Notes under the pieces: model-generated
What the model saw: only the letters and a program-made list of their open reading frames with translations
Databases searched by the model: none
Told to the model about the DNA's origin: nothing
Position numbers and translations under genes: made by a program
In this document: piece after piece, positions 5,635 to 42,476 of the stretch
Position numbering within the stretch: the stretch's first letter is position 1
Layout of the letters: each line of letters starts with the position of its first letter
IMG/VR virus record: IMGVR_UViG_3300032334_001259
Location: 62,001-126,000 of that record
Length of the DNA: 64,000 bases
Reading direction: 5' to 3' (one strand)

Positions 5635-5642
5635 TATTTATA
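5635..5642 (-). promoter_or_regulatory. T4-type late promoter (TATAAATA)
   Basis: Perfect consensus upstream of gp19. Confidence 0.75.
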
Positions 5643-9012: not shown

Positions 9013-9092
9013 TTGGTCTATCCTTATAGGTGTTGTTAATATTTAGCGGATAGACCTAAAAGAACCTCCATTTCAGGAGTTATATACGGACA

Positions 9093-30108: not shown

Positions 30109-30178
30109 CTTCTAAATCCTCTGCAGTTATTTATATGAAAGTTCTTGACTTTATTGGATTAAAAGTATAAAGTAAATT

Positions 30179-31408
30179 ATGGCTGATGTAAAGATACTGC
30201 ACGGTGACTGCCGTGAACAACTCAAAACTCTACCCGACAATAGCATTGATAGCATTGTGACTGATCCACCTTATGGTTTAAGTGTTGAACCAGATATGAC
30301 AGAAGTTCTTCGTCACTGGTTAAATGGTGATGACTATGAACATACTGGCAAGGGTTTTATGGGTAAAAGTTGGGACAGTTTTGTTCCAGGACCAAGTGTA
30401 TGGCGTGAATGTTTGCGTGTTCTTAAACCAGGCGGTCATATGTTATCATTCTTTGGTTCAAGAACTTATGATTTAGGTGTCACAGCAATTAGATTGGCTG
30501 GTTTTGAAATACGTGACCAGATTATGTGGGTTTATGGAACAGGATTTCCAAAGAATCATGATATAAGCAAGGCAATTGACAATGCTGCTGGTGCTGAAAG
30601 AACTGTTGGTGGTAGAGTATGGAGCGGCGGCGCACGTAGTGGTGGTATTATTAAAGATGATGCCAGTGAAACTACCTCAGAACGAATCATTTATGATGAA
30701 CCAGCAACCCCAGAAGCAAAAAAGTGGCAAGGTTGGGGGACAGCACTTAAACCATCACATGAACCAATTTGTGTTGCACGTAAGCCAATAAGTGAAAAAA
30801 CTATTGCAGATAATGTATTGCAATGGGGTGTCGGTGCATTGAATATTGATGCATCACGAGTTGGAGAAGGTGCAAAAAAGTGGGTTACACCACGAGGTGG
30901 TATTTGGACAACAGATAGTGAAGCAAAAGCGGAACTTGTTGATAATCCATTAGGTCGTTGGCCAGCAAACTTTATCCATGATGGTAGCATAGAAACAGAA
31001 TGGGAAAAGTTTTTTTATTGTGCGAAGGCAAATAATACAGACCGCAATGATGGTTTAGATGATTTTGAAGGTGGCAAGACCAATGATGGTCGTAAAAAGG
31101 ATGCGGATAATGCATATCAACGTGGTGCATCAATACGTAAAAACACACATCCTACTGTAAAACCTACTGATTTAATGCGTTATTTGTGCAAAATGATCAC
31201 TCCAACTGGTGGAACAGTCCTAGACCCATTTACTGGCAGTGGTTCTACTGGTCGTGGTGCTGTGTTAGAAGGTTTTAATTTTATTGGTATTGAAATGAGT
31301 GAAGAATATGTTGAAATTGCTAAAGCACGAATTGCTGTGGTAGAAAAAAAGGTAGCACAAGTTGAAGATAAAATTACTACATACAATAATCTATTTGAGG
31401 AAGAATAA
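30179..31408 (+). CDS. DNA amino-methyltransferase (N6-A/N4-C, beta class)
   Basis: TDPPY catalytic motif; HPTVKP..LMRYL; VLDPFTGSGSTG SAM-binding motif near the C-terminus. Confidence 0.92.
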   Translation: MADVKILHGDCREQLKTLPDNSIDSIVTDPPYGLSVEPDMTEVLRHWLNGDDYEHTGKGFMGKSWDSFVPGPSVWRECLRVLKPGGHMLSFFGSRTYDLGVTAIRLAGFEIRDQIMWVYGTGFPKNHDISKAIDNAAGAERTVGGRVWSGGARSGGIIKDDASETTSERIIYDEPATPEAKKWQGWGTALKPSHEPICVARKPISEKTIADNVLQWGVGALNIDASRVGEGAKKWVTPRGGIWTTDSEAKAELVDNPLGRWPANFIHDGSIETEWEKFFYCAKANNTDRNDGLDDFEGGKTNDGRKKDADNAYQRGASIRKNTHPTVKPTDLMRYLCKMITPTGGTVLDPFTGSGSTGRGAVLEGFNFIGIEMSEEYVEIAKARIAVVEKKVAQVEDKITTYNNLFEEE

Positions 31409-32493
31409 TGGGCGTCCAAATATTACAAGGTGATTGCCGTGATGTTTTGAAAACATTGGCAGATGAAAGTGTAAACATGTGTGTAACATCACCACCTTAT
31501 TATGGATTGCGTGATTACAAAACTGCTACATGGAGTGGTGGTGATTCTAATTGTGATCATGTTGAAAAGATTGCCGCACATGGCGGTGAACGTGCTGACC
31601 GTGACCAAGGTGGTAATGTATTCAAGTTTCGTGGAACTTGTGAAAAGTGTGGCGCAACCTCAAGTGATAACCAGATTGGTCTTGAACAAACACCAGAAGA
31701 ATATATTCAACAATTAGTAGAAGTATTCCGTGAAGTTCGTCGTGTTCTTAAAGATGATGGCACACTTTGGGTAAACATTGGTGATAGTTATTACAATTAT
31801 CGCAGTGGAACTGCATTTGTTAAGCAAAGTGTAGCAAAAACTGACCAAGATTTGCCAAGTTTCAGCCCAAGTCGTAATAATAAATTAGATGGTCTTAAAA
31901 GCAAAGACCTTATTGGTATTCCATGGATGTTAGCATTTGCTCTACGTGCCGATGGTTGGTATTTGCGTCAAGACATTATTTGGCACAAACCAAACCCAAT
32001 GCCAGAAAGTGTGAAAGACCGTTGCACAAAGGCACATGAATATATCTTTTTGTTAAGCAAAAGCAAGAATTATTACTTTGACCATGAAGCAATTAAAGAA
32101 GAAGGTGTAATACCTGCTGGTACAAAAGCGGCAAAAGGCAGTGCGGAACGTCAAGCAGAGTTTGGTGTAAATGGTCGTCCACCAGAATATAAAATCTATG
32201 ATGGTATGCGACAAAAGCGTAGTGTTTGGACTGTCACAACAAAACCTTATAAAGGTGCACATTTTGCCACATTTCCAACAGATTTGATTGAACCTTGTAT
32301 TTTAGCAGGTTGCCCAAAAGATGGTATGGTATTAGACCCATTTGGCGGCAGTGGCACAACTGGATTGGTAAGCAATCGTCTTGGACGTAATGCTACTTTA
32401 ATTGAACTTAATCCAGAATATATTGATTTGGCAGAAGATCGCATTGATCCACCTGAACAACGTTTAGACAGTAATCTGTTTACATTTGAATGA
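31408..32493 (+). CDS. DNA methyltransferase, likely N4-cytosine (beta class)
   Basis: TSPPY motif; WYLRQDIIWHKPNPMPESV.DR; HFATFP; LDPFGGSGTT. Confidence 0.92.
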   Translation: MGVQILQGDCRDVLKTLADESVNMCVTSPPYYGLRDYKTATWSGGDSNCDHVEKIAAHGGERADRDQGGNVFKFRGTCEKCGATSSDNQIGLEQTPEEYIQQLVEVFREVRRVLKDDGTLWVNIGDSYYNYRSGTAFVKQSVAKTDQDLPSFSPSRNNKLDGLKSKDLIGIPWMLAFALRADGWYLRQDIIWHKPNPMPESVKDRCTKAHEYIFLLSKSKNYYFDHEAIKEEGVIPAGTKAAKGSAERQAEFGVNGRPPEYKIYDGMRQKRSVWTVTTKPYKGAHFATFPTDLIEPCILAGCPKDGMVLDPFGGSGTTGLVSNRLGRNATLIELNPEYIDLAEDRIDPPEQRLDSNLFTFE

Positions 32494-32907: not shown

Positions 32908-33831
32908 ATGCTTACTAGGTTTATTGCTGTTGCAGCCGCAACACTTATTAGTACTGCTGCTTTTGCAGTAGAAGTTACAGGTGCAGGTGCTACTTTCCCA
33001 CAACCAATTTATATGAAGTGGGCAGAAGGTTATAAGAAGGCCACTGGTAATGTCATTAATTATCAAGGTATTGGTAGTGGTGCAGGTATCAAGCAAATTG
33101 AAGCAAAGACAGTAAATTTTGGTGCTACAGATATTCCAGTAAAGCCAGAAGACCTTGAAAAGAAAGGTCAAGTTCAATTCCCAATGATCGTTGGTGGTAT
33201 TGTTCCAATTATTAATCTTAAGGATGTTGACCATCTAACATTAACAACAGACATTCTTGCAAAAATTTATAGTGAAAAGATTCGTCGTTGGAATGACAAG
33301 GAAATTGCAGACCTTAATTCAGGTGTAAAACTTCCAGACCTTCCAATTATCAAGATTCGTCGTGCTGATGGTAGTGGCACAACTTGGAATTTTACAAAGT
33401 TTCTTACAGAAGCCAATGAAGATTGGAAGAAGAAGTATGGAACTGGTCAAACTGTTGAATGGGTTGGCGGTGCAATCGGAGCAAAGGGTAATGACGGTGT
33501 TGCAAACAACGTTTACCAGACAAATGGTTCCATTGGTTATGTAGAATATGCTTTTGCCAAGCAAAATGATCTTACTGTTGCTGATATGATTGGCAAGGAT
33601 GGTAAGAAGGTTTCACCTGGTCTTAAGGCTTTCCAAACAACTTGGCCAATGGTTGCTACAAGTTACATTGTTCTAAACAAAGAAAATGATAACAAAGAAG
33701 CAGTTCAAGCGGCAATTAAGTTCTTTGAATATGGTTATGCAAATGACAAGGACGCAGAAGCACTTGACTATATTCCATTGACTGCAGCACAAAAGGCAGA
33801 AAGCAAAAAGGCTTGGTCAGTAGTCAAGTAA
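32908..33831 (+). CDS. pstS: Phosphate ABC transporter substrate-binding protein
   Basis: Signal peptide; GAGATFP, NYQGIGSGAG, FGATD, RRADGSGTT, GSIGYVE. Confidence 0.95.
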   Translation: MLTRFIAVAAATLISTAAFAVEVTGAGATFPQPIYMKWAEGYKKATGNVINYQGIGSGAGIKQIEAKTVNFGATDIPVKPEDLEKKGQVQFPMIVGGIVPIINLKDVDHLTLTTDILAKIYSEKIRRWNDKEIADLNSGVKLPDLPIIKIRRADGSGTTWNFTKFLTEANEDWKKKYGTGQTVEWVGGAIGAKGNDGVANNVYQTNGSIGYVEYAFAKQNDLTVADMIGKDGKKVSPGLKAFQTTWPMVATSYIVLNKENDNKEAVQAAIKFFEYGYANDKDAEALDYIPLTAAQKAESKKAWSVVK

Positions 33832-33854: not shown

Positions 33855-33893
33855 ATGCCCTACAGAATTATTTTTTGTAGGGCATTATTTTTT
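33855..33893 (+). terminator. Intrinsic terminator after pstS
   Basis: atgccctaca/tgtagggcat stem followed by a T tract. Confidence 0.7.
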
Positions 33894-33895
33894 TC

Positions 33896-33925
33896 TTGAC
33901 ATTATATAATTATCGTGTATAAATA
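33896..33925 (+). promoter_or_regulatory. Composite promoter: TTGACA -35 plus T4 late TATAAATA
   Basis: TTGACA at 33896-33901; TATAAATA at 33918-33925. Confidence 0.65.
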
Positions 33926-33946
33926 GACCTACAACAGAGAGTGATT

Positions 33947-34027
33947 ATGACTAACACGCCTAAACATAACGATTATATCATTTGCCGCATGCCAGAAGGT
34001 TTCTGGATTACGGGGGCGTGTGCCTAA
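33947..34027 (+). CDS. Putative 26-aa leader peptide
   Basis: AGAGAG RBS; MTNTPKHNDYIICRMPEGFWITGACA; its 3' end overlaps the antiterminator strand. Confidence 0.6.
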   Translation: MTNTPKHNDYIICRMPEGFWITGACA

Positions 34028-34055
34028 TGTGAACGCACATTAGTGTATGCACTTA

Positions 34056-34087
34056 GCCCCCGAAGCGAAAGTTTCGGGGGTTTTTTT
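34056..34087 (+). terminator. Strong intrinsic terminator (attenuator) with a competing antiterminator
   Basis: gcccccgaagc-GAAA-gtttcgggggt plus T7; the 5' arm gcccccg is exactly complementary to cgggggc at 34011-34017. Confidence 0.85.
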
Positions 34088-34265
34088 ATTTTCAGGACGG
34101 TATCCCCTTTGCATAAGGATACCCACCGACCAGTACTTGGGCCAAATGGCTGAATAGGTGGTTTCGGCGGTGAAAAATGGGGTGGGAGTGTCAATATTTT
34201 GACATTTTTACCAAAAAATTGCCTAAAATTTGTGCAAACTTTTTTTGATTTTCGTGCATTTTTTT

Positions 34266-34294
34266 CTTGACTTATTATACGGTTGTGCTATTAT
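34266..34294 (+). promoter_or_regulatory. Sigma70-type promoter for the HTH gene
   Basis: CTTGACT...TGC-TATTAT. Confidence 0.6.
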
Positions 34295-34344
34295 GCATAT
34301 GTTGATGACGACATGGTGTCGTCCTTTTTATGGAGAAAGTAACT

Positions 34345-34611
34345 ATGACTATCGTATCAAATACAGACCGTGTTCTTGAAGCCCTTAAGTCTGGTGAGTT
34401 GCTCACCGCAAAGCAGATTTCTGCCCGTTTTGGCGTTGCCAATCCACATGCAGCTATTTCTGCAATCCGTCTCAAGGGTTATGCAGTTTATCTCAATGAG
34501 TATAAGACTGCAAAGGGTGAAGTAACCAAGAAGTATCGTCTTGGCACTCCTTCACGTGAGATCGTCGCAGCTGGTATGCGGGCTCTCATGGATGCAGGCG
34601 TTCGCATCTAA
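34345..34611 (+). CDS. Winged helix-turn-helix DNA-binding protein
   Basis: RVLEALKSGELLTAKQISARFGVANPHAAISAIRLKGY; start at 34345 behind a GGAGA RBS. Confidence 0.75.
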   Translation: MTIVSNTDRVLEALKSGELLTAKQISARFGVANPHAAISAIRLKGYAVYLNEYKTAKGEVTKKYRLGTPSREIVAAGMRALMDAGVRI

Positions 34612-34641
34612 TTATATTATTATATAATTTCAAGATTAAAG

Positions 34642-34666
34642 AGGGGCGGCTTCCGCCCCTTTTTCT
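34642..34666 (+). terminator. Intrinsic terminator after the HTH gene
   Basis: aggggcgg-ctt-ccgcccct plus T tract. Confidence 0.75.
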
Positions 34667-34674
34667 GTTTTTCT

Positions 34675-34748
34675 ATCAGTGTGGTGTAATGGTAACACAG
34701 CGGTCTCCAAAACCGTTATTCAGGGTTCGAGTCCTTGCACTGATGCCA
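34675..34748 (+). tRNA. trnW: tRNA-Trp(CCA)
   Basis: Acceptor atcagtg/cactgat; anticodon loop ct-cca-aa; TTCGA T loop; encoded CCA. Confidence 0.92.
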
Positions 34749-34803
34749 AAAATAACATTATTATGACATTGACACGCAATTTAAAAGGATATATAGTTAT
34801 AGG

Positions 34804-35034
34804 ATGGCATCAAGCAAACCGCCCATCATTCCAGATAATACTTGCCCATATATTGATATGGCACAAGACCTTATTAGCCAAATGTCTGCCCAAGAAGATG
34901 CAGAGTGGCGTAAAAAACAAGCAGATTTAGCAGAAAGTTTATTGGAATATATTCGTGCAGCAAATTTAGAGTTGCGTGAAGGCGGAAAGTATTGGTATAA
35001 TCGTGCAAAGAAGGTAGGAAAGGGAACTGTATGA
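34804..35034 (+). CDS. Hypothetical protein
   Basis: 76 aa; PIIPDNTCPYID motif. Confidence 0.6.
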   Translation: MASSKPPIIPDNTCPYIDMAQDLISQMSAQEDAEWRKKQADLAESLLEYIRAANLELREGGKYWYNRAKKVGKGTV

Positions 35035-35678
35035 AAGGCAAGATAGCGATTTTTGTTGATCACCCAAGAGTTAGCATACATGGTGCTAATGGGTTAATGA
35101 ACGCACTTGCTCAAGATTATCAGTTTAAGATTTTTACAAGACATGATCTTCCATATGATGATTGGTGGGATGATGTTGATATCTGTGCCGTGCCAGGTGG
35201 TATTGGTGATTATATGACATTTAATCGTGTTATGAAACATCATATTCCTAAAATTAAAACATTTCTTGACCGTGGTGGTCGTTATCTTGGTATTTGTATG
35301 GGTGCATATTGGGCTGGCAGTATGTTTCTTGATATACTCAAAGGACGTGATTGTGTTCAATATCTTAGACGCCCTAAAACTGATACACGCCGACCACATG
35401 CAAAAGATTTAGAAGTTACTTGGTTAGGTAATAAAGAAAAGATATTTTGGTATGATGGATGTAGCATTATTGGAAAAGGTAAGTTTGATGTTGTTGCCAC
35501 TTACCCCAATGGTGATGCTATGGCAGGTTACCAAGATCGTATTGGTCTTATCGGCAGTCATCCAGAAGCAGAAAAATTCTGGTATGACGAATATACTTGG
35601 TTGAAGCCAAAGTATGTTGGAAAAGAACACAATCATGAACTATTACATGATTTTGTTGATGAACTTATGAAACGCTAA
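35031..35678 (+). CDS. Class I glutamine amidotransferase-like protein (BPL_N type)
   Basis: VPGG, YLGICMGAY nucleophile elbow, SHPE His-x-Glu. Confidence 0.8.
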   Translation: MKGKIAIFVDHPRVSIHGANGLMNALAQDYQFKIFTRHDLPYDDWWDDVDICAVPGGIGDYMTFNRVMKHHIPKIKTFLDRGGRYLGICMGAYWAGSMFLDILKGRDCVQYLRRPKTDTRRPHAKDLEVTWLGNKEKIFWYDGCSIIGKGKFDVVATYPNGDAMAGYQDRIGLIGSHPEAEKFWYDEYTWLKPKYVGKEHNHELLHDFVDELMKR

Positions 35679-35926
35679 TGATAGAATATATTATTGTATT
35701 TTTATCGATGTTTGTCGTGGATGTATTCTATGCAATATATCTAAAAAGCATTGAAAATAACAAACCTATATTTGCCTCTTTTATGGCTACCATTGTGTTT
35801 TTTGTTGCAAGTATCGCAACAATAGGTTATATTGATAATCACTGGTTACTTGTTCCAGCTTGTTTAGGTGCATTTGCTGGCACATGGGTTGGTGTTATGT
35901 ATAATATTAAAAAGAAGAAAAACTAA
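35678..35926 (+). CDS. Small three-helix membrane protein
   Basis: 82 aa with three hydrophobic segments. Confidence 0.65.
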   Translation: MIEYIIVFLSMFVVDVFYAIYLKSIENNKPIFASFMATIVFFVASIATIGYIDNHWLLVPACLGAFAGTWVGVMYNIKKKKN

Positions 35927-35928
35927 TT

Positions 35929-36006
35929 GGGGAAGTGAGTGCGGAATGGTTACGCCAAGGTCTGCAAAACCTGTTCATGTGGGTTCGAGTCCCATCTTCC
36001 CCTCCA
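35929..36006 (+). tRNA. trnC: tRNA-Cys(GCA)
   Basis: ggggaag/cttcccc acceptor; ct-gca-aa loop; U73; CCA. Confidence 0.9.
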
Positions 36007-36169
36007 TTACTGGAGATAAAGAGATAGATTTGTTAATACACAAAACTCGTATGTGCTTGTGTAACAAATACTACAATCAAGTTTATAAGTACATTTCTAT
36101 CTTAGAAACTAAAAATGTTTTCTTTAATGTAGAAAATAATAAAGAATACCAAGAATGGTTACATAATAC

Positions 36170-36244
36170 GGCTCCATCTTATAATGGTTATTATCCTTGA
36201 CTGTCTATCAGGGGATAGGGGTTCGATTCTCCTTGGAGTCGCCA
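36170..36244 (+). tRNA. trnD: tRNA-Asp(GTC)
   Basis: ggctcca/tggagtc acceptor; ct-gtc-ta loop; G73; CCA. Confidence 0.9.
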
Positions 36245-36255
36245 TAAATAACTAT

Positions 36256-36696
36256 ATGGCACTAGATCCTAAATCCGCACAGAAACTTGGTGAAGCATAT
36301 GGCAAAGGCGTCACCGACGCCGTATTTGGTATTGTTGATGATGTTCGCAATGCGAAAAATATCAAAGCATCAAATAATGCAAAGATTGCCGCAAAAAATA
36401 AAATTACAGAAATCAACAATCAAATAATTCGCAATAATAACGCACTGCGTGAACAAGCAATGCGTGAAATTGCGGCAGAAGCAGAAGCAAGTGCATTAGC
36501 AAAAATGACACCTGCACAACGTCAAGCATATAAAGCAACAAAAGAAGCTAATGCCGCAGCAGCACAACGTGCAGCTAAAGAAGCTAAAAGAAAAAGTGAA
36601 GAGTTTTGGCAGTATTTTTGGGCAATTGTGATTGTTCTAGTCTGCATACCAATTTTAGGTGGTGCTGGCTATCTACTACTTAAATTAGCACACTGA
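36256..36696 (+). CDS. Coiled-coil protein with C-terminal transmembrane helix
   Basis: Start moved to ATG 36256 because the upstream part overlaps tRNA-Asp; CATAAATA late promoter at 36243-36250. Confidence 0.65.
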   Translation: MALDPKSAQKLGEAYGKGVTDAVFGIVDDVRNAKNIKASNNAKIAAKNKITEINNQIIRNNNALREQAMREIAAEAEASALAKMTPAQRQAYKATKEANAAAAQRAAKEAKRKSEEFWQYFWAIVIVLVCIPILGGAGYLLLKLAH

Positions 36697-36741
36697 TTTC
36701 AATTATATCAGTATCTCAATTACATCTATAATTTTCCATGT

Positions 36742-36990
36742 TTGGAGATACTGTTGGATATTCTACCACAAACCTACGATATGGCGTGGGGTCCGTGCTA
36801 TTGGCGGATGCATTATTTTTATCATAATGTAAAAGAATACCATTGGACACAATGGGATGCCAGTGCTGATTATAGCAAACAAAGCATTATGAATGCATGG
36901 GTTGAAGCAAAAAACAAAGCTGATCCAACAATACGAATACGTATAACGTGTCAAAATAACAAATATATTATTTTAGATACACGTCCTTAA
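36742..36990 (+). CDS. Hypothetical protein
   Basis: 82-aa ORF with TTG start. Confidence 0.4.
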   Translation: MEILLDILPQTYDMAWGPCYWRMHYFYHNVKEYHWTQWDASADYSKQSIMNAWVEAKNKADPTIRIRITCQNNKYIILDTRP

Positions 36991-36995
36991 TTTAA

Positions 36996-37072
36996 CCGCC
37001 CATAGATAACGCTGGCTATATCACTGCCCTTTCAAGGCAGAGTAACGAGTTCGACACTCGTTGGGCGGACCA
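36996..37072 (+). tRNA. trnE: tRNA-Glu(TTC)
   Basis: ccgccca/tgggcgg acceptor; ctgcc-ct-ttc-aa-ggcag; CCA. Confidence 0.88.
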
Positions 37073-37125
37073 ATTAATTTGCATATTCTAATAATTTTTG
37101 TTATACTTTCATTATAAGGTGTAAC

Positions 37126-37647
37126 ATGAATACAGAAGAATATGCAGCATTTGAAAAAAGTGCAAGACCAATACTAGAAAGCTATCGTGGTAATATTGAT
37201 TATTATGTTGGCACAATGTATGAAGGTTTTTTAAGTCATCCAAATACAGTTCGTGGTAGTATTGGTGAAGCAATTGTTAGTGCAGATATGTCAAGCCGTG
37301 GACATGTTGTAGAAGATCGTATTAATGCTGGTCATGACAGAATTATTGATGGTATTAAAACAGAAATAAAACACGCAATTCAAGGCAAATTTGGTCCAGA
37401 TAGTCATATTATAAATCATATTAGTGCTGATAAAGATTGGGATAGATTAATATTTTATGGTGTAAACCGTCCATTGGAAGATACACGAAGAGTATGGTTT
37501 ACAAAAGAAGATTTTATTGCAAATATTAACAGTGGTATTTTTCGTCGTCAACAAGGTGGACAAGATGGTGGAAATGATGATTATATGGTTAGCAACACAA
37601 GTAAATTATTGTGTCAACCATGGGTTCATGATATTCAAACTTTTTAA
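37126..37647 (+). CDS. PD-(D/E)XK restriction-endonuclease-like protein
   Basis: GSIGEAIV...GHDRIIDGIKTEIK fits the E...D-x5-7-E-x-K pattern. Confidence 0.65.
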   Translation: MNTEEYAAFEKSARPILESYRGNIDYYVGTMYEGFLSHPNTVRGSIGEAIVSADMSSRGHVVEDRINAGHDRIIDGIKTEIKHAIQGKFGPDSHIINHISADKDWDRLIFYGVNRPLEDTRRVWFTKEDFIANINSGIFRRQQGGQDGGNDDYMVSNTSKLLCQPWVHDIQTF

Positions 37648-37722
37648 TGGCGTGTAGCTCAGTGGTAGTAGCACAGTCCTGATAAGACTGGGGTCATTGG
37701 TTCAAATCCAATCATGCCAACC
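37648..37722 (+). tRNA. trnI: tRNA-Ile(GAT)
   Basis: tggcgtg/catgcca acceptor; cagtc-ct-gat-aa-gactg; CCA. Confidence 0.9.
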
Positions 37723-37729
37723 AAATAAA

Positions 37730-37759
37730 AAATGAGAGGAAATTGCTTTCCTCTCATTT
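37730..37759. terminator. Bidirectional terminator
   Basis: aaatgagaggaaa-ttgc-tttcctctcattt perfect stem between convergent units. Confidence 0.7.
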
Positions 37760-37784
37760 ATTGTAGAATAAACTTTTGGGAAAA

Positions 37785-38018
37785 TTACTTCTTCTGCCAA
37801 ATGTTATAGAGAACCCAAATTGCAATCAAGCCTACAAGACCTTCTGATCCAAGACCTTTTACAATTGATGTAACGTTAGCAATAACGTCTACATTTGGAA
37901 GGAATGGGATTGCTACACCCTTGAAAATTACACTAGTAACAATCATAAGTGCTAGTACACTTAATAGAGTGTCAGCAAGTGCTGAAACCCATGATTTAAC
38001 TGTCTTTAAAATATCCAT
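37785..38018 (-). CDS. Small two-helix membrane protein
   Basis: 77 aa with GGAG RBS and two hydrophobic segments. Confidence 0.7.
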   Translation of the reverse strand: MDILKTVKSWVSALADTLLSVLALMIVTSVIFKGVAIPFLPNVDVIANVTSIVKGLGSEGLVGLIAIWVLYNIWQKK

Positions 38019-38069
38019 TTTATACTTCTCCTAATACCTTTTGTCATAAAAAGGTAATAATATTTATTC

Positions 38070-38146
38070 GCTGTTGGGGCGGTTGTGGAAATCGCACCAC
38101 TCTCATAAGGTGGGAAAAGCTGCTTCGAGTGCAGCCAACAGCACCA
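38070..38146 (+). tRNA. tRNA with CAT anticodon (elongator Met or Ile2/lysidine)
   Basis: gctgttg/caacagc acceptor; ccact-ct-cat-aa-ggtgg; CCA; lacks initiator hallmarks. Confidence 0.85.
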
Positions 38147-38174
38147 TAAGCACAAAGCACCAATTAAATATATT

Positions 38175-38633
38175 ATGAAAAGAATTATTCTAATTTGTTT
38201 GTTATTGTCAGGATGCAACACATTACAAAAAACTAGTGTAGATGTTGTTGGAACTGGTTTATCACATCATTTAATTGAACGGACTAATCCTCCTTATAAT
38301 GAAACCAATAGTGGTGTTGGATTAAGACTTAATTTTAATAATGATACTGCAATACAAAGTGGATTTTACAATAACAGCTATAACAACCAAAGCAATTATG
38401 CAATATTAGATTATTCACCATACAAATTATTAAGACAAAATGATTGTGGAAAAATAGATGTAGGTGGTTTTATAGGAGCAGCAACTGGTTATAAAACATA
38501 TCCAGTTCCAGTTGGTGGTATACAAGGTGCAATTCATTGTGGTGATTTTTATGTGCGTTCAAGGGTAACACCAGCACCAATTGCTGGTGCAGTTTTATCC
38601 GTTGAATTTGGCTATACAATTTTTAAATTTTAG
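38175..38633 (+). CDS. Exported small beta-barrel protein, PagP-like
   Basis: Lipobox LSGC; GLSHH...YNETN.G.G...GFYNNSY...SNY...GG..G.ATGY; C-terminal Phe. Confidence 0.55.
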   Translation: MKRIILICLLLSGCNTLQKTSVDVVGTGLSHHLIERTNPPYNETNSGVGLRLNFNNDTAIQSGFYNNSYNNQSNYAILDYSPYKLLRQNDCGKIDVGGFIGAATGYKTYPVPVGGIQGAIHCGDFYVRSRVTPAPIAGAVLSVEFGYTIFKF

Positions 38634-38791
38634 GGACGACCTTGACCACGATAGGTTTTAGTATTGCGACGAACATGTTTATTTTTAGGACGACTTGCCT
38701 TGGCATGACCTATACTGGTACGTTTTTTAACACTTGCTTTTTTAAATGTAACTTTTTGTGCAGCATTACTTCCACCTTTTGCTTTAGCCAT
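38630..38791 (-). CDS. Small very basic protein ending KTYRGQGRP (not in ORF track)
   Basis: AGGAG RBS; MAKAKGGSNAAQKVTFKKASVKKRTSIGHAKASRPKNKHVRRNTKTYRGQGRP, 53 aa. Confidence 0.75.
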   Translation of the reverse strand: MAKAKGGSNAAQKVTFKKASVKKRTSIGHAKASRPKNKHVRRNTKTYRGQGRP

Positions 38792-38849
38792 GGTTGATCT
38801 CCTATTAAAATATTTACATTAAAATTACAAAATGATACATACAAATATT

Positions 38850-38923
38850 GCGGCTATGATGTAGAGGTAACCTGTCTCGTTGCCAACGAGAATTCACCAG
38901 TTCGATTCTGGTTAGCCGCTCCA
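38850..38923 (+). tRNA. trnG: tRNA-Gly(GCC)
   Basis: gcggcta/tagccgc acceptor; tctcg-tt-gcc-aa-cgaga; U73; CCA. Confidence 0.92.
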
Positions 38924-38936
38924 ATTAAATACCTAC

Positions 38937-39548
38937 ATGGAAGATATAGAAGCAATTTCTTGGAAAAATACTCACAAAGAAGATTTATGGGTATTTGATA
39001 AACTAATTATTGCCAAGAAAATGGGTTATACATGTGGTCCTGTAGGAGTTGATGTGCCTAAACCTGGTTTTTACATTGTGCGCCCGTGTGTCAATATACC
39101 AGGCATGGGACGTGGTGCTAAATTGAGACACCTTATTAAACGAACAAAACACTTACCTACTGGACATTTCTGGTGTGAATCATTCAGTGGTAGACATATA
39201 AGCGTTGATTATAAAAATGGTGAACAAGTGTTAGCAGTAGAAGGATTTCGTAGAGACGGTCATCTTTGGCAGTTTTGCAAATGGGAACGTGTAAATGATG
39301 ATTTGCCATTACCAGAAATATTTCACGACGTAATAAATCGTTATGAATATATCAATGTTGAATATATTGGCGGAAAAGTTATAGAAATTCATTTTCGTCA
39401 TAATCCTGATTTTGTATGGGGCAATAGTGTAGCATATCCAGTTTGGGAAAAAATAGATGTGCGACAATTATATCCAGAAGTTGACTTTGATAGTTTAACT
39501 TTTGTATCATCTCCAGATTATAAACGTTTAGGATTTTATATAGATTAA
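38937..39548 (+). CDS. Conserved phage protein, possible ATP-grasp fold
   Basis: DKLII...GY.CGP, YIVRPC.N..GMG.GA, FWCE.F.G.H.S.D, NVEYIGGK.IE.HFRHNPD. Confidence 0.6.
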   Translation: MEDIEAISWKNTHKEDLWVFDKLIIAKKMGYTCGPVGVDVPKPGFYIVRPCVNIPGMGRGAKLRHLIKRTKHLPTGHFWCESFSGRHISVDYKNGEQVLAVEGFRRDGHLWQFCKWERVNDDLPLPEIFHDVINRYEYINVEYIGGKVIEIHFRHNPDFVWGNSVAYPVWEKIDVRQLYPEVDFDSLTFVSSPDYKRLGFYID

Positions 39549-39553
39549 AATAT

Positions 39554-39628
39554 GCTGGTATGGTGTAATAGTTTGCACATAAGGTTGTGGCACTGGTAGA
39601 GTTAGTTCGAATCTAACAGACGGTGCCA
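39554..39628 (+). pseudogene. Degenerate tRNA-His(GTG)-like gene
   Basis: Intact D arm, T arm (gttag-ttcgaat-ctaac), tt-gtg-gc loop and CCA; acceptor and anticodon stems poorly paired. Confidence 0.6.
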
Positions 39629-39671
39629 TTAAAATTTGACTATTGTCAAATATATGATATATTTAAAATAT

Positions 39672-39744
39672 TGCGGGGTAGTGGAAAAGTGCCACGGTTG
39701 GCTCATAACCAACAAAACTGGAGCGTTACCAGCGACCGCAACCA
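39672..39744 (+). tRNA. trnM: tRNA-Met(CAT), initiator-like, atypical T loop
   Basis: tgcgggg...gaccgca-A-CCA; gttgg-ct-cat-aa-ccaac; T loop AGCGTTA. Confidence 0.75.
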
Positions 39745-39750
39745 ATTTAT

Positions 39751-39826
39751 CTCTGTGGAGTTAGGGTAAGATTAATGCGGCACTTGGACTGCCGAGAACC
39801 TGGGGCAGCGCCAGGCACGGAGACCA
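39751..39826 (+). tRNA. trnP: tRNA-Pro(TGG), atypical T loop
   Basis: ctctgtg/cacggag acceptor; cggca-ct-tgg-ac-tgccg; T arm cctgg-GGCAGCG-ccagg; CCA. Confidence 0.8.
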
Positions 39827-39914
39827 TCTAGAAGGCAAGATACACGTATTACTAAGTGGGTGTATCACATCGTGGGCGTGTTGGAGTGGGGCTGCACGAT
39901 GATTAGCTGATTTT

Positions 39915-39998
39915 GGATCGGTTACCGTAGTGGCGAACGGCCTAGGCTTTTAACCTAGTATACAAACATCATGGGTTCGAGTCCCATCCGATCCTCCA
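39915..39998 (+). tRNA. trnK: tRNA-Lys(TTT) with enlarged variable region
   Basis: ggatcgg/ccgatcc acceptor; ctagg-ct-ttt-aa-cctag; 12-nt variable loop; U73; CCA. Confidence 0.85.
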
Positions 39999-40006
39999 AA
40001 AATATG

Positions 40007-40041
40007 GGTAGAGCATAAATATAATAAAAGGATGCTCTACC
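40007..40041 (+). promoter_or_regulatory. Hairpin next to the RBS with an embedded late promoter, upstream of the HNH gene
   Basis: ggtagagcat (40007-40016) pairs with atgctctacc (40032-40041); CATAAATA at 40014-40021; AAAGGA RBS at 40027-40032. Confidence 0.7.
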
Positions 40042-40042
40042 T

Positions 40043-40471
40043 ATGCCAAGTAAAATAAAAAGTTTTTGTAAAAATTGTGGTGTCAGTTTTATACACGGAA
40101 AAAGTTCATATGGAATATATTGTAGTAATAGGTGTCAGGGGGAACTAAAATCTAAAACAATTATAGAAAATTGGTTTAATGGAACAGATAAAGGATATAA
40201 AGTAGGATTTAGAATTAAACCTGCTATAAGAAATTATCTGTTAGAAAAAACTAATTATAGTTGCTCCGAATGTGGGTGGAATAAAATAAACCCAAAAACT
40301 GGAAAATCTCCATTAGAAATTGATCACATTGACGGAGATTGTTCAAATAATAAAGAAGAAAATTTAAGAGTTCTTTGTCCTAATTGCCATTCTTTAACGC
40401 CAACATGGAAAGCATTAAACAAAGGAAATGGAAATAAAGAAAGTCATAGATATTCTGGTCTTATAAAATAA
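40043..40471 (+). mobile_element. Free-standing HNH homing endonuclease gene
   Basis: Zn-ribbon CxxC...YCSNRC; CSECG; LEIDHIDG..SNN.EENLRVLCPNCH. Confidence 0.88.
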
Positions 40472-40548
40472 GCCTACGTAGTTCAATGGATTAGAATGAC
40501 GGTCTTCGAAACCGTGGGTTACAGGTTCAAGTCCTGTTGGGTCTACCA
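40472..40548 (+). pseudogene. Chimeric tRNA-Arg(TCG): duplicated 5' part joined to a foreign T arm/acceptor 3' strand
   Basis: First 49 nt match 41266-41314 with one mismatch; 3' strand tgggtct does not pair with gcctacg. Confidence 0.75.
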
Positions 40549-41223
40549 ATTATTAATATCTTCTTCTATTTCATTAAATCCAACTTGATTTGATTTGGCA
40601 CCCATTTTATGGTTTGCCTTCCACCAATTTTTCCAAACATTATAAATTCTATCTTTATTAAGTGGATTTAAGTTAAAAAATTCAAGAGATTTGTTAATTT
40701 CAATTGTAAATTTATTTCCATTTAAAAACGCAGAGTGTGGAAATTTAAAATAATTTTTATTTTTTTCATCTAAAAATCTGATTAATTCTTTTTCATACTT
40801 AATTTGTGCATCAACCATGTTATCATCTGAACCACTACTTTCTACAAAGTTTCTTCTGAATAAAAGCCATTTAGTTTCTTTTTCATTAGATAAATCCCAA
40901 TCAATGTAAATTAATTTTTCAAAATTTAACCATTCATTAAATGAAAAAAATCTTGGATGAGCTGCTGTTATGTTTTTATGAAATTTACCTTCATATGCTT
41001 TTCTCCATGCAAATTTTGGAATATTAGGTGCTTCTGCTGAATATATTTCATCTAATTTATTAAAAAAATCTGGTCCAAAATACTTCTCACTACAACTTAG
41101 AATATTAGCAAGTAAATGTCCACCAGTCATAGGAAAATAAGCAATTAATAAACTATCTTTGTGTGGTATTCTTTGAACAGAAAGTAAATTTTCAATAGGA
41201 GTAAATGGCCATGTGTTTATCAT
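40543..41223 (-). CDS. Hypothetical protein, sulfotransferase-like P-loop fold
   Basis: 226 aa, very AT-rich; IAYFPMTGGHLLANIL resembles a PAPS-binding/P-loop start; flanked by the tRNA-Arg repeats. Confidence 0.55.
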   Translation of the reverse strand: MINTWPFTPIENLLSVQRIPHKDSLLIAYFPMTGGHLLANILSCSEKYFGPDFFNKLDEIYSAEAPNIPKFAWRKAYEGKFHKNITAAHPRFFSFNEWLNFEKLIYIDWDLSNEKETKWLLFRRNFVESSGSDDNMVDAQIKYEKELIRFLDEKNKNYFKFPHSAFLNGNKFTIEINKSLEFFNLNPLNKDRIYNVWKNWWKANHKMGAKSNQVGFNEIEEDINNW

Positions 41224-41265
41224 GCAATATTTAATTTAAATATTTTATCTAATAAAAAAATAATT

Positions 41266-41342
41266 GCCTACGTAGTTCAATGGATAAGAATGACGGTCTT
41301 CGAAACCGTGGGTTGGGGGTTCGAATCCCTCCGTAGGCTCCA
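41266..41342 (+). tRNA. trnR: tRNA-Arg(TCG)
   Basis: gcctacg/cgtaggc acceptor; acggt-ct-tcg-aa-accgt; CCA. Confidence 0.9.
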
Positions 41343-41352
41343 AAAAATAATG

Positions 41353-41382
41353 CTTGACATAATTGTAAAGTTGATATATATT
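41353..41382 (+). promoter_or_regulatory. Sigma70-type promoter for the distal tRNAs
   Basis: CTTGACA-17 nt-TATATT. Confidence 0.6.
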
Positions 41383-41399
41383 ATGAATATAATAGTTAT

Positions 41400-41475
41400 T
41401 CCCGAATAGCTCAACTGGCAGAGCACAGTGCTGTTAACACTGGGGTTACTTGTTCGAATCAAGTTTCGGGAGCCA
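41400..41475 (+). tRNA. trnN: tRNA-Asn(GTT)
   Basis: tcccgaa/ttcggga acceptor; cagtg-ct-gtt-aa-cactg; G73; CCA. Confidence 0.92.
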
Positions 41476-41480
41476 CTTTT

Positions 41481-42107
41481 TTAAAACGCTAATGGATAAA
41501 AATACCAAATACCATCAGCAAGTAGGGCAAGTCCAACTAAACCTACAGCAATACTACCGCCCCATAACAGTATGTTAGCACCAAGTATAGCAGTAGTGCT
41601 TAATACAATTGCAATTTGAAATGCCGTACTTGCCAATCCAAATAGTGGATTACGTTGTTTAGCAGCATCACGTTCTGCTTCAAGTTCTCGTGCTTCTGCC
41701 ATAATTTCTTTTTTTCCATGACCTTTTGGATCACTTTCAAGTTTATCAATAACGGCTTGATAACGTGATGCACGTTCTGCTAATATCTTTTTAACATTTG
41801 CTGGTGTAGATGGGTCTTCTAGTTGTGCTTTAGTATCTTCTAAATCTACATAATATAAGTTTTGTTTAATGCTTTTTGCTTGATAAAAAGCCCATGCATT
41901 TGTTACTTCTATATTTGTTTCCATAATTCTTGTAGCATTTTTACCACCAAAAAGTGTGCATACCGATAATATCATTGCAAATACGGTAATGGTAATTGTA
42001 GAAAGTTTTCTTATCTTTGCTTCTTTATCAGCAAGTTTATCTATATCACCTTCTTTACGAGTTTTAAGATATGTGTTTACAGTGTTTTGAAATTGTTTGA
42101 TGTCCAT
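41481..42107 (-). CDS. DUF4337-like membrane protein
   Basis: TM helix, NAWAFYQAKSIKQ, coiled coil, two C-terminal TM helices; start moved to MDIKQF because the longer ORF overlaps tRNA-Leu. Confidence 0.7.
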   Translation of the reverse strand: MDIKQFQNTVNTYLKTRKEGDIDKLADKEAKIRKLSTITITVFAMILSVCTLFGGKNATRIMETNIEVTNAWAFYQAKSIKQNLYYVDLEDTKAQLEDPSTPANVKKILAERASRYQAVIDKLESDPKGHGKKEIMAEARELEAERDAAKQRNPLFGLASTAFQIAIVLSTTAILGANILLWGGSIAVGLVGLALLADGIWYFYPLAF

Positions 42108-42156
42108 GGTATTTTTCTCTTGACTATATGTGATATTTAGGATATATATAATACAT

Positions 42157-42234
42157 GCCCTACTAGCCCAACTGGTTAGAGGTGCTTGCCTTAGAAGCAA
42201 GAGGTTCTCCGTTCGAATCGGAGGTGGGGCACCA
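42157..42234 (+). tRNA. trnL: tRNA-Leu(TAG) without a long variable arm
   Basis: gccctac/gtggggc acceptor; cttgc-ct-tag-aa-gcaag; 5-nt variable loop; A73; CCA. Confidence 0.85.
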
Positions 42235-42236
42235 AT

Positions 42237-42310
42237 GCCGCCATAGTATAATGGTATTACAGTGGATTAGTAACCCTCTGACGGAAGTTCGATTCTTTCT
42301 GGCGGCACCA
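42237..42310 (+). tRNA. trnT: tRNA-Thr(AGT)
   Basis: gccgcca/tggcggc acceptor; loop tt-agt-aa; anticodon stem only 3/5 paired; CCA. Confidence 0.7.
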
Positions 42311-42314
42311 TATA

Positions 42315-42398
42315 GGAAGATAGCGAGCAAGGTGCTCAAACCGTCTTGAAAACGGTGCCACCGAAAGGTTGATGGTTCGATTCCTTTATCTTCCGCCA
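42315..42398 (+). tRNA. trnS: tRNA-Ser(TGA)
   Basis: ggaagat/atcttcc acceptor; accgt-ct-tga-aa-acggt; long variable arm; G73; CCA. Confidence 0.9.
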
Positions 42399-42402
42399 TA
42401 AT

Positions 42403-42476
42403 GCGGAGTTGGCATATTGGTTGTGCTCCAGCCTTCCAAGCTGGCTAAACGAGTTCGATTCTCGTACTCCGCTCCA
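42403..42476 (+). tRNA. trnG: tRNA-Gly(TCC)
   Basis: gcggagt/actccgc acceptor; ccagc-ct-tcc-aa-gctgg; U73; CCA. Confidence 0.93.

Follow-up and report, generated by a model that had tools for sequence, protein, structure and literature searches.

Known leader-peptide attenuators and the phage locus

In the ribosome-mediated attenuators of amino-acid operons, such as the trp, his, leu, thr, ilv and pheA leaders of E. coli, a short translated leader ORF is combined with four RNA segments that form 1:2, 2:3 (antiterminator) or 3:4 (intrinsic terminator) pairings, and a ribosome at the end of the ORF masks segment 2. In the translation-stress attenuators upstream of antibiotic-resistance genes in Firmicutes, for example the tylosin-responsive yxjB leader (PMC6851288), the leader ORF has no amino-acid codon run, and any slowing or stalling of the ribosome within it favours an antiterminator. 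In the pyrBI attenuator, the outcome depends on how closely the ribosome follows RNA polymerase, and termination efficiency depends on the distance from stop codon to terminator, reaching its maximum beyond about 30 bp (PMC4824070). The released RNA and leader peptide can have functions of their own, as for rnTrpL/peTrpL of Sinorhizobium meliloti, derived from a classical Trp-codon attenuator of trpE(G) (PMC6614838, PMC7298713). In the tna operon, the leader peptide TnaC, with an essential Trp residue and fixed Trp-Asp-Pro spacing, stalls at its stop codon with free tryptophan and blocks Rho, without an intrinsic terminator.

Here we analysed a 64,000-nt stretch of an uncultured freshwater jumbo phage (positions 62,001 to 126,000 of IMGVR_UViG_3300032334_001259; hereafter, the window), in which a sequence-only reading had proposed a leader-peptide attenuator upstream of the phage tRNA region. 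The locus shares with the amino-acid operon leaders the four-segment layout, but no run of codons for a regulated amino acid is common to its family, segment 1 sits at the very start of the ORF, the stop codon lies inside the antiterminator hairpin, and the downstream genes are tRNAs and a structured RNA in a phage rather than biosynthetic enzymes. Functionally, the Firmicutes attenuators are the closest analogue to a sensor of translation state, but those respond to drug-bound ribosomes and control resistance genes in bacteria, whereas here the context is a phage tRNA array and the hosts are probably Gram-negative. In pyrBI the ribosome itself blocks the terminator hairpin, whereas here the stop codon is a constant 25-29 nt upstream, so that a terminating ribosome would not cover the stem, and a separate RNA antiterminator is present. 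Functions of the kind seen for rnTrpL/peTrpL may explain the unusually conserved peptide and RNA, though a trans function here would be conjecture. Unlike TnaC, the terminator is intrinsic, the spacing from Trp to stop varies from 6 to 11 residues, and there is no conserved Pro at the end of the peptide.

Two Rfam scans, one of them permissive and covering 451 nt, gave nothing near threshold: the best scores, driven by the terminator, were His_leader at 20.6 bits (gathering score 49) and trpB at 19.6 (59), and there was no T-box hit. In blastn searches of 50,697 phage records with the window locus and three divergent loci only tRNA matches or nothing were found, and hence no cultured phage in this set carries the module; the closest isolates by tail sheath are PA5oct-like Pseudomonas jumbo phages at 42% identity. 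A search of bacterial genomes with the peptide-level pattern hit only one 8.4-kb contig binned in a Gammaproteobacteria MAG, which is the same phage locus.

Anatomy of the leader

We first checked the features listed in the sequence-only reading, and its observation is confirmed: every one is present at the stated coordinates. The predicted promoter on the + strand (33896-33925) comprises TTGACA (33896-33901), a 16-nt spacer and TATAAATA (33918-33925), in which a sigma-70 -10 TATAAA overlaps a T4-type late-promoter consensus. The TATAAATA motif occurs only 3 times in the window against 9.9 expected, with one copy just upstream of a gene in the tail-gene block. A Shine-Dalgarno-like GAGAG (33937-33941), 5 nt before the ATG, has a predicted anti-SD duplex of -3.3 kcal/mol, which is ordinary for this phage (long ORFs of the window average -4.0 +/- 3.3, and 17% of random 20-mers do as well). 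The leader ORF runs from ATG at 33947 to TAA at 34025-34027 and encodes 26 codons, MTNTPKHNDYIICRMPEGFWITGACA, with a single Trp codon at 34004-34006. A GTG start at 33941 was rejected because, unlike the ATG, it is not conserved, and read-through of the TAA into the same-frame ORF ending at 34153 was rejected because relatives have non-triplet indels after the T tract and a whole ORF inserted there.

Hairpin H1 (CCAGAA-GGU-UUCUGG, 33992-34006) contains the Trp codon, and hairpin H2 (CTAATGTG/CACATTAG, 34024-34043) contains the stop codon and forms the tip of the long antiterminator hairpin, bringing segments 2 and 3 together. The intrinsic terminator (34055-34087) has a 12-pair stem (34055-34082) with a GAAA loop, followed by seven T at 34081-34087. 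Its 5' arm, GCCCCCG (segment 3, 34056-34062), pairs with CGGGGGU (segment 4, 34075-34081) and is the exact complement of CGGGGGC (34011-34017) in segment 2 (34011-34021), which lies 7 nt before the stop codon. A perfect complement of 7 nt or more to the terminator 5' arm within the 128-nt leader occurred in only 0.4% of 20000 dinucleotide-preserving shuffles (P about 0.004), and five other terminators in the window have only 4-5 nt. The whole transcript folds well below shuffles (z = -5.2). We also found the missing fourth segment: ACACGCC (segment 1, 33954-33960, codons 3-5) pairs with GGCGUGU at 34015-34021, with CC at 33985-33986 adding two more pairs, such that GGGGCGUGU (34013-34021) pairs with segment 1 and the CC dinucleotide. 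The design is therefore a full 1:2 / 2:3 / 3:4 layout, with the 1:2 pairing supported by prediction only.

Constrained folding was consistent with this layout. Before segment 3 is made, the minimum-energy fold has 1:2; once it is made, the long 2:3 hairpin is the minimum (-39.0 against -35.9 kcal/mol); and the full transcript takes the terminator form (-57.7 against -44.1 with 2:3 forced). A ribosome mask at codons 2-16 keeps all 7 pairs of 2:3, whereas a mask at codon 20 or later abolishes them. All these energies are predictions, and in variants with the GCCCCU arm (relatives L017 and L021) the 2:3 hairpin is not the predicted minimum for the nascent RNA.

The sequence-only reading had pointed out that the peptide uses 16 different amino acids, including 13 of the 15 served by the downstream tRNAs. 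Both counts are correct but unremarkable (P = 0.084 and 0.088 for random 26-mers of this phage's proteins), and hence amino-acid diversity as evidence for a general sensor is not significant. Its statement that there is no codon run is debatable for this clade, since codons 6-10 (33962-33976; AAA, CAU, AAC, GAU and UAU) encode Lys-His-Asn-Asp-Tyr, a NAN/NAY run that sits where a stalled ribosome would cover segment 1. A run of 5 or more from these residues occurs in 0.8% of random 26-mers (P about 0.008), but this is a post hoc observation, the clade itself shows Asn or Tyr at the third position, and the run is absent from the L009 type (a variant with a divergent N-terminal half) and from the divergent X and F clades.

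Genes downstream

A second conserved structured RNA, element 2 (34093-34176), lies just after the terminator and consists of a hairpin, P1, followed directly by a multi-stem domain, P2/P3. It has 17 pairs with 100% of cells paired, 9 of them with compensatory changes, and a covariation of 0.571 against 0.213 in shuffled alignments; RNAalifold agrees, G-U wobbles indicate the + strand, and there is no Rfam match. A minus-strand ORF (34024-34194) over the terminator and element 2 was rejected, as element 2 varies by compensatory pairs and a 2-nt indel. There is one copy per locus, and no extra copies were found before other tRNAs.

As the sequence-only reading had cautioned, an HTH gene separates the leader from the tRNAs in the window. 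This inserted cassette (34189-34664, + strand) comprises a palindrome, TGTCAA-TATT-TTGACA (34189-34204), a predicted promoter, TTGACT-16-TATTAT (34267-34294), a winged-helix ORF (34345-34611; HTH_39 at 19.8 bits, below cutoff) and a strong terminator (34638-34664). It is not part of the ancestral module, being present only in some relatives, whereas others have nothing, a GIY-YIG endonuclease or extra tRNAs at this position. Then follows tRNA-Trp(CCA) (34675-34748, + strand), the first gene of the 15-tRNA array (34675-42476), which has internal promoters at 34769 and 41354. The switch therefore cannot be the sole gate of the tRNAs in the window.

Conservation in close relatives

In 21 close variants, which keep the region almost invariant, TTGACA and TATAAATA are invariant and the Shine-Dalgarno-like sequence is GAGAG or GAGAA. 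Between the window and relative L042, the leader is the best-conserved stretch of the locus (90-92% identity, against 79% for pstS, 79.5% for tRNA-Trp, 74% for element 2 and 72-75% for downstream genes), which fits overlapping coding and alternative-structure constraints. The ORF has a coding signature, with synonymous-only changes at P5, H7, Y10 and E17, in-frame indels (L054 and the L009 type), and indels outside the ORF that are not multiples of 3, although codons 2, 21 and 22 are hypervariable.

Because segments 2, 3 and 4 are nearly invariant in this clade, with GGGGCGTGTGCC identical in all variants including third codon positions, covariation there is minimal and could not serve as a test: there is one A-U/G-U/G-C series at one 2:3 pair, and one A-U to G-C compensatory change in H2 in 7 of the 21 variants. 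H1 is 100% paired with one A-U to G-U change, and the terminator is conserved with wobble-compatible changes. The 1:2 pairing appears in the RNAalifold consensus of the 21 variants, with 99% of cells paired but almost no variation, and the L009 type replaces segment 1 with ACAUGCACCCC, which still pairs. The middle part of the extended antiterminator hairpin in the window (34018-23 with 34045-50) was rejected, since substitutions in relatives break it, as judged by eye on the alignments.

Distant relatives with the same layout and different sequences

We next used element 2 as a handle to find distant relatives, whose homologues of this RNA score 61-92 bits. At least eight subclades have the same layout at the head of a tRNA array: an invariant TATAAATA promoter motif, an SD, a 24-35-codon ORF in which only Met1 and one Trp align as invariant, and a stop codon 25-29 nt before a terminator. 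The terminator was found in 18 of 19 divergent loci analysed, with none detected in L157. In all relatives element 2 follows the terminator, after at most a small ORF or a promoter, and precedes the tRNA array.

In 17 of 18 representatives the minimum fold predicted for the nascent RNA joins the ORF 3' end plus stop codon to the segment running into the terminator 5' arm, using 3-10 arm nucleotides, and an equivalent small hairpin follows the stop codon in every clade. The pairing sequences are clade-specific: GGGGGC/GCCCCC, GGGGUUC/GAACCCC, GGAGCGC/GCGCUCC, CGCUCAGUG/CACUGAGCG and CGCUCAACGU/ACGUUGGGCG. Cross-clade MAFFT alignment plus RNAalifold of the 3' domain gave no structure because the alignment is not structural, and we therefore used per-sequence folds and compared cognate with non-cognate duplexes. 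Cognate 2:3 duplexes average -19.1 kcal/mol and pairings with terminators of other clades -10.0 +/- 3.7, with only 1 of 20000 permutations of 8 subclade representatives reaching the cognate sum. In the F clade the helix is 88% paired, 6 of 11 pairs have compensatory changes, and covariation is 0.494 against 0.247 shuffled (0/500); in most F-clade folds the ORF 5' end pairs with the ORF 3' end. Relative L124 changes segments 2, 3 and 4 together (C to U, G to A, C to U). The locus thus withstood the challenge set beforehand, namely conservation and covariation in relatives, once distant relatives were included.

The arrangement downstream differs between clades. The gap from terminator to element 2 is 4-14 nt in the window clade and in X-clade loci L103/L167 and L156, and in a scan limited to sigma-70 consensus promoters none was found up to tRNA-Trp (L042, L021) or to the first tRNA (L103). 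In L021, L031, L042 and L045, tRNA-Trp starts exactly 13 nt after element 2. In L014, L020, L021, L150 and L120 a small ORF begins shortly after the T tract (RBS within about 10-20 nt), with no consensus promoter before the 52-aa ORF. In the F clade, by contrast, a sigma-70 promoter sequence (TTGACA or TTGATT, 17-nt spacer, TATATT) lies between the terminator and element 2, so that the leader there looks like a separate transcription unit, and the overlap with the terminator arm is only 3-4 nt in F1. In the window only element 2 follows directly, before the HTH cassette.

Interpretation

Altogether, we consider the locus to be probably a ribosome-dependent (leader-peptide) transcription attenuator at the 5' entrance of the phage tRNA array (probability about 0.6). 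In this view, transcription would start at about 33927-33932, from a promoter combining sigma-70 elements with the late consensus, and the nascent RNA could take three states. With no ribosome, segment 1 would pair with segment 2, the terminator would form, and RNA polymerase would stop at the T tract. A ribosome loaded but lagging in roughly the first 16 codons would cover or unwind segment 1, segment 2 would then pair with segment 3, stacked on H2 as one long hairpin, and with the base of the terminator stem blocked transcription would read through. A ribosome that has reached codon 20 or later, or the stop codon, would cover segment 2 and the terminator would form. Read-through would therefore report a lag of translation behind transcription, that is, reduced translation capacity, and send polymerase into element 2 and the genes behind it, which in compact relatives are a 52-aa ORF and/or the first tRNA directly, amounting to a demand-driven feedback on tRNA supply. 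Our analysis establishes that the parts exist and are conserved, that the pairings co-evolve and that compact relatives have no consensus promoter downstream. That the promoter is active and used by a late sigma factor, that the ORF is translated, that ribosome position decides the outcome and changes read-through, which stress is sensed and how large the effect is are inferred from sequence and predicted folds alone.

The interpretation in the sequence-only reading is thus partly supported: its core claim of a translated leader with mutually exclusive antiterminator and terminator at the entrance of the tRNA region is supported, whereas its general sensor of tRNA depletion remains a hypothesis and the link to anticodon nucleases is pure inference. 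An attenuator specific for Trp and serving tRNA-Trp was rejected, since a ribosome stalled at UGG masks segment 2 in this clade and the first tRNA in other clades is Lys, Ile, Glu, Ser, Tyr or Asn. The lack of a family-wide run of regulatory codons and the merely average SD weigh against the attenuator reading, although not all attenuators need such a run, as in the drug-responsive ones.

Of the alternatives, a stand-alone gene for a small protein, for example a host-takeover or anti-defence peptide, is unlikely but the strongest. The unit has its own predicted promoter and a strong terminator, the peptide is conserved with synonymous changes in the close clade, and a few residues recur across clades (Pro-Lys near the N-terminus, an Arg, the invariant Trp), which classical leader peptides do not need; moreover, a separate promoter follows in the F clade and an independent HTH cassette in the window. 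The long hairpin over the stop codon would then stabilise or process the mRNA, its overlap with the terminator stem would be incidental, and downstream genes would be served by leak-through or unrecognised phage promoters. However, this does not explain why the ORF 3' end co-evolves with the first 3-7 nt of the terminator stem in every clade, including the three-way change in L124, why the stop-to-terminator distance is fixed, why segment 1 pairs with segment 2, or why a small ORF or the first tRNA abuts the terminator without a consensus promoter. Only Met1 and one Trp are invariant, and PHROG and Pfam searches of the leader peptides and the 52-aa ORF found no family.

Less likely still is a nascent-peptide arrest sensor of the TnaC, SecM or Erm-leader kind, a variant of the main reading in which the peptide sequence, rather than translation speed in general, carries the signal, with the invariant Trp and nearby residues stalling the ribosome in response to a small molecule or to ribosome state. 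The residues after the Trp recur in the X and F clades (W-S/Y-E-D/G), and in the L009 type the C-terminal half is conserved while the N-terminal half diverges. Yet the Trp-to-stop distance varies, residues 21-22, right after the Trp, are hypervariable in the window clade, and the Trp codon there lies in a conserved hairpin arm, such that RNA constraint could explain it. In the window a ribosome with UGG in the A site would cover segment 2 and favour termination, whereas in the X and F clades segment 2 starts about 16-20 nt after the UGG (read from the sequences, not computed), so the logic is not uniform. Similarly improbable, though not exclusive of attenuation, is that the terminated 160-nt leader transcript is itself the product, a trans-acting or dual-function small RNA like rnTrpL/peTrpL acting on host or phage targets. 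The strong terminator with its U tail, the compact fold and the extreme nucleotide conservation are in line with this, as is the pairing of the SD, in the terminated fold, with GCACUU(A) just before the terminator in both promoter-proximal sequence types. But no target can be named, the invariant stretches are those engaged in the alternative helices, and architecture rather than sequence is conserved between clades, which argues for a cis-acting structure rather than a seed that pairs in trans.

A more speculative reading, which we regard as unlikely on present evidence, is that the leader and element 2 together form a previously undescribed phage control module for tRNA supply. The attenuator would measure how far ribosomes lag behind RNA polymerase and open the array when decoding slows, for example late in infection or when host anticodon nucleases cut tRNAs, whose classic targets the Lys-His-Asn-Asp-Tyr run of the window clade matches. 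Element 2 would be a new class of leader RNA that conditions the polymerase or the precursor for passage through, or processing of, the long, highly structured array.

Retention of the same wiring with different sequences suggests a real switch, of a kind that has not been described for phage tRNA genes. Element 2 is a well-supported new structured RNA motif tied to the same position, which could be registered as an RNA family and used to find these modules in metagenomes. Phage tRNA genes are now viewed both as codon-usage helpers and as counter-measures to host tRNA-cleaving defences, but how phages control their expression is almost unknown. A translation-coupled switch at the entrance of tRNA arrays, conserved in architecture across many uncultured freshwater phages while its sequence drifts, would give phages a feedback loop from decoding capacity to tRNA supply.

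Organization of the leader upstream of the phage tRNA array

The window matches the 338-kb IMG/VR contig IMGVR_UViG_3300032334_001259, a jumbo myovirus whose tail sheath is 42% identical to that of Pseudomonas phage PA5oct. The leader lies between a pstS-like gene (32908-33831, with its own terminator at 33855-33885) and an array of 15 tRNA genes (34675-42476). An N6/N4 DNA methylase gene (31408-32493) and this pstS-like gene, encoding a phosphate-binding protein, lie immediately upstream of the module, and pstS is an auxiliary metabolic gene seen in only some relatives at this position.

We first checked the elements proposed from the sequence alone, and each was present where it had been placed: TTGACA at 33896-33901, a 16-nt spacer and TATAAATA at 33918-33925; GAGAG at 33937-33941; a 26-codon ORF from 33947 to 34027; hairpin H1 at 33992-34006; hairpin H2 at 34024-34043, enclosing the TAA; a 12-pair terminator at 34055-34082 followed by seven T; and CGGGGGC at 34011-34017, exactly complementary to GCCCCCG at 34056-34062. 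The motif TATAAATA occurs only three times in 64 kb, at 5635-5642 (-), 30128-30135 (-) and 33918-33925 (+), against about 10 expected, and one copy lies just upstream of a gene in the tail-gene block, consistent with use as a T4-type late promoter and avoidance elsewhere, although such use is inferred from sequence alone.

A perfect complement of 7 nt or more to the terminator 5' arm occurs in 0.4% of dinucleotide shuffles of the leader, whereas five other terminators in the window have only 4-5 nt, and the transcript is predicted to fold 5 standard deviations better than shuffles. By contrast, the 16 different amino acids in the peptide and its coverage of the amino acids served by the tRNAs, which the sequence-only reading had pointed out, are not unusual (P = 0.084 and 0.088), and the SD is average for this phage.

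Conservation in close relatives

Pattern and protein searches of IMG/VR and JGI metagenomes gave 21 distinct variants of the element (loci are designated L and a number), all from freshwater phage contigs. The upstream flank differs between them and conservation starts exactly at TTGACA. The ORF is kept: changes at P5, H7, Y10 and E17 are synonymous only, codon 8 toggles between Asn and Tyr, and codons 2, 21 and 22 are hypervariable. L054 has an in-frame 3-nt insertion, the L009 type has a very different N-terminal half but still an ORF, one codon longer, and the L014 type turns TAA into a sense codon and stops two codons later, while indels outside the ORF are not multiples of three. One 8.4-kb contig carrying this phage locus (L068, RGPR01000083.1) is binned in a Gammaproteobacteria MAG, which is either a weak hint at the host or a binning artefact, and another metagenome contig (L055) carries the whole module twice (3597-3628 and 9072-9103), 5475 nt apart and with identical sequence, probably as a concatemer or circular-assembly artefact.

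RNAalifold on the 21 variants gave the terminated conformer, which contains a long-range helix (ACACGCC at 33954-60 with GGCGUGU at 34015-21, plus CC at 33985-86 with GG at 34013-14), H1, H2 and the terminator. The predicted design therefore has four segments, not three: segment 1 near the start of the ORF, segment 2 near its end, and segments 3 and 4, the two arms of the terminator. Both the terminated and the antiterminated structures are compatible with about 99% of cells, but segments 2-4 are almost invariant and covariation is therefore limited to one A-U to G-C pair in H2 and one G-C/G-U/A-U series in the 2:3 helix. That invariance is informative in itself, since between the window and L042 the leader is 90-92% identical, compared to 79% for pstS, 79.5% for tRNA-Trp, 74% for the second structured RNA described below (element 2) and 72-75% for the next genes.

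Predicted folding of the nascent transcript

Up to just before segment 3, the predicted minimum fold has the 1:2 pairing. Once segment 3 is out, one long hairpin, consisting of 2:3 stacked through an internal loop on H2, is the minimum in six of seven variants (-39.0 against -35.9 kcal/mol in the window), and with segment 4 present the terminator conformer wins (-57.7 against -44.1 kcal/mol with 2:3 forced). Masking a 30-nt ribosome footprint at codons 2-16 leaves all seven 2:3 pairs, whereas masking at codon 20 or later, including the stop codon, removes them. This is the geometry of a trp-type attenuator, with the difference that segment 1 lies at codons 3-5, so that an initiating or early-elongating ribosome would cover it.

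A second structured RNA leads to distant relatives

Six nucleotides after the T tract lies an 84-nt structured RNA, element 2 (34093-34176; also L042 5349-5430, L131 4023-4107 and L156 2659-2742, minus strand), predicted to form a 7-pair hairpin abutting a multi-stem domain. In 22 variants all 17 tested pairs are standard in 100% of cells, nine pairs have compensatory changes with up to five pair types at one position, and the covariation score is 0.571, against 0.213 in shuffles and at most 0.161 for slid partners. Invariant single-stranded stretches are GCAUAAG, AGUACU/GGUACU, CCAAAUGG and GUGGUUUC. Element 2 has no match in Rfam and occurs once per locus; a processing, stability or polymerase-conditioning role is only a guess.

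A loose pattern from element 2, scanned over IMG/VR and filtered with the covariance model, recovered at least 18 more divergent loci at 61-90 bits, plus one further window-type contig; the distant clades, like all relatives, are metagenomic and were reached only through this one anchored pattern. Upstream of nearly all of these element 2 copies there is again a TATAAATA motif, an SD, a 24-35-codon ORF, a small hairpin after the stop codon and a terminator, although no terminator was detected in L157. Element 2 lies after the leader terminator, with at most a small ORF or a promoter in between, and in every locus with enough downstream sequence a tRNA array follows. We call the groups W (window), X1-X3 and F1, F1b, F2 and F2b. 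Their peptides align with only Met1 and one Trp invariant, the stop-to-terminator distance is 25-29 nt throughout, and the first tRNA differs: Trp in W; Lys, Ile or Glu in X; and Ser, Tyr or Asn in F. The module therefore belongs to tRNA arrays in general, not to tRNA-Trp.

Co-evolution of the competing helices

We next examined whether the pairing is maintained across clades, the test on which the idea had been staked. In 17 of 18 representatives, the predicted minimum fold of the nascent RNA (through the terminator 5' arm) pairs the last nucleotides of the ORF plus the stop codon with the segment running into the terminator 5' arm, using between 3 and 10 arm nucleotides. The pairing sequences (segment 2/segment 3) are clade-specific: GGGGGC/GCCCCC in W, GGGGUUC/GAACCCC in X2 and X3, GGAGCGC/GCGCUCC in F2, CGCUCAGUG/CACUGAGCG in F1 and CGCUCAACGU/ACGUUGGGCG in F1b. 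Cognate duplexes average -19.1 kcal/mol, whereas duplexes between an ORF end and the terminators of other major clades average -10.0 +/- 3.7 kcal/mol, and among 20000 permutations of eight subclade representatives only one reaches the cognate sum. In an alignment of the 11 F-clade leaders the helix is 88% paired, six of 11 pairs have compensatory changes, and the covariation score is 0.494 against 0.247 shuffled (0/500). The terminator in the same alignment also covaries, and L124 changes the corresponding positions of segments 2, 3 and 4 together. The idea passes this test.

Genomic context downstream of the terminator

In the W clade and in X-clade loci L103/L167 and L156, 4-14 nt separate the T tract from element 2, and in L021, L031, L042 and L045 tRNA-Trp starts 13 nt after element 2. 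A scan for sigma-70-type promoters found none between the terminator and the tRNA in L042, L021 and L103. In L014, L020, L021, L150 and L120, belonging to several clades, a small basic ORF of about 52-54 aa (MKWPKLL... at 683-841 in L021; a divergent homologue in L120) sits between the terminator and element 2, with a strong RBS within about 10-20 nt of the T tract, no promoter and no family match. In those genomes these genes can only be reached through the terminator, or from promoters that a consensus scan, which sees only sigma-70 consensus, would miss. Against this, the F clade has a good promoter (TTGACA or TTGATT, 17-nt spacer, TATATT) placed so that transcription would start at the first base of element 2.

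In the window itself, an inserted cassette found only in some relatives (34189-34664) lies between element 2 and tRNA-Trp. It consists of a perfect palindrome TGTCAA-TATT-TTGACA (34189-34204), a promoter TTGACT-16-TATTAT, a gene for an 88-aa weak winged-helix protein (HTH_39, below cutoff; PHROG 4973) and a strong, bidirectional-looking terminator (34638-64) 10 nt before tRNA-Trp, and looks like a self-regulated repressor module dropped into the tRNA leader. Further promoters lie inside the array. In this view the switch would modulate entry into the array rather than being its only gate, and in this particular phage its immediate target would be element 2. The same slot holds a GIY-YIG homing-endonuclease-like ORF in some phages and an extra tRNA-Tyr in others (observed among L015, L027, L002 and L067), and seems to be a hotspot for insertions. 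In F-clade and some W-clade loci (for example L162 2790-2830 and L017 5150-5260) a conserved GAAA-loop hairpin (consensus about GAAGGAUAACGAAAGUUAUCUCUUC) follows element 2, and after it come tRNA-like remnants with a good T arm that ARAGORN calls as an undetermined tRNA, so there may be more unannotated RNA at the head of these arrays.

Interpretation

The observation made from the sequence alone thus holds, whereas its interpretation is supported only in part, for the attenuator but not for the stress proposed to trigger it. Three other explanations, namely a stand-alone small-protein gene, a peptide-arrest sensor, and a trans-acting leader RNA, for which rnTrpL/peTrpL provides a precedent, account for part of the data but not for the co-evolving overlap with the terminator.

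The element would work like the trp, his and leu leaders, and in lacking a codon run it resembles the translation-stress attenuators of resistance genes. It is not a sequence member of any Rfam leader family, nor is it TnaC-like, because the Trp-to-stop spacing varies and the terminator is intrinsic. Full-text literature searches found no description of a leader-peptide attenuator in front of phage tRNA genes, an absence in the library searched that is not proof. Element 2 is an additional, apparently undescribed RNA motif.

The specific proposal of a sensor of host anticodon nucleases remains speculative. One lead favours it: codons 6-10 in the W clade (33962-33976; Lys-His-Asn-Asp-Tyr in the window, Lys-His-Asn/Tyr-Asp-Tyr in the clade) correspond to the tRNAs classically hit by such nucleases, in the window the full set of queuosine-tRNA amino acids plus Lys in a row, and sit where a stalled ribosome would cover segment 1. 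A run of five or more from this set occurs in 0.8% of random 26-mers, and only C/U third-base or Asn/Tyr changes are seen in the main group of the clade. However, the run, which was noticed post hoc, is missing from the L009 type and from the X and F clades.

The best-supported reading is a ribosome-dependent attenuator, to which we assign a probability of about 0.6. Our analyses establish the parts and their conservation, the co-evolution of the competing helices, the coding signature of the ORF and the lack of consensus promoters before the downstream genes of compact relatives, whereas the structures themselves are all predictions and the regulatory behaviour is inferred: that ribosome position selects the fold, that read-through would rise when translation lags, and that the phage would in this way tune its tRNA supply.
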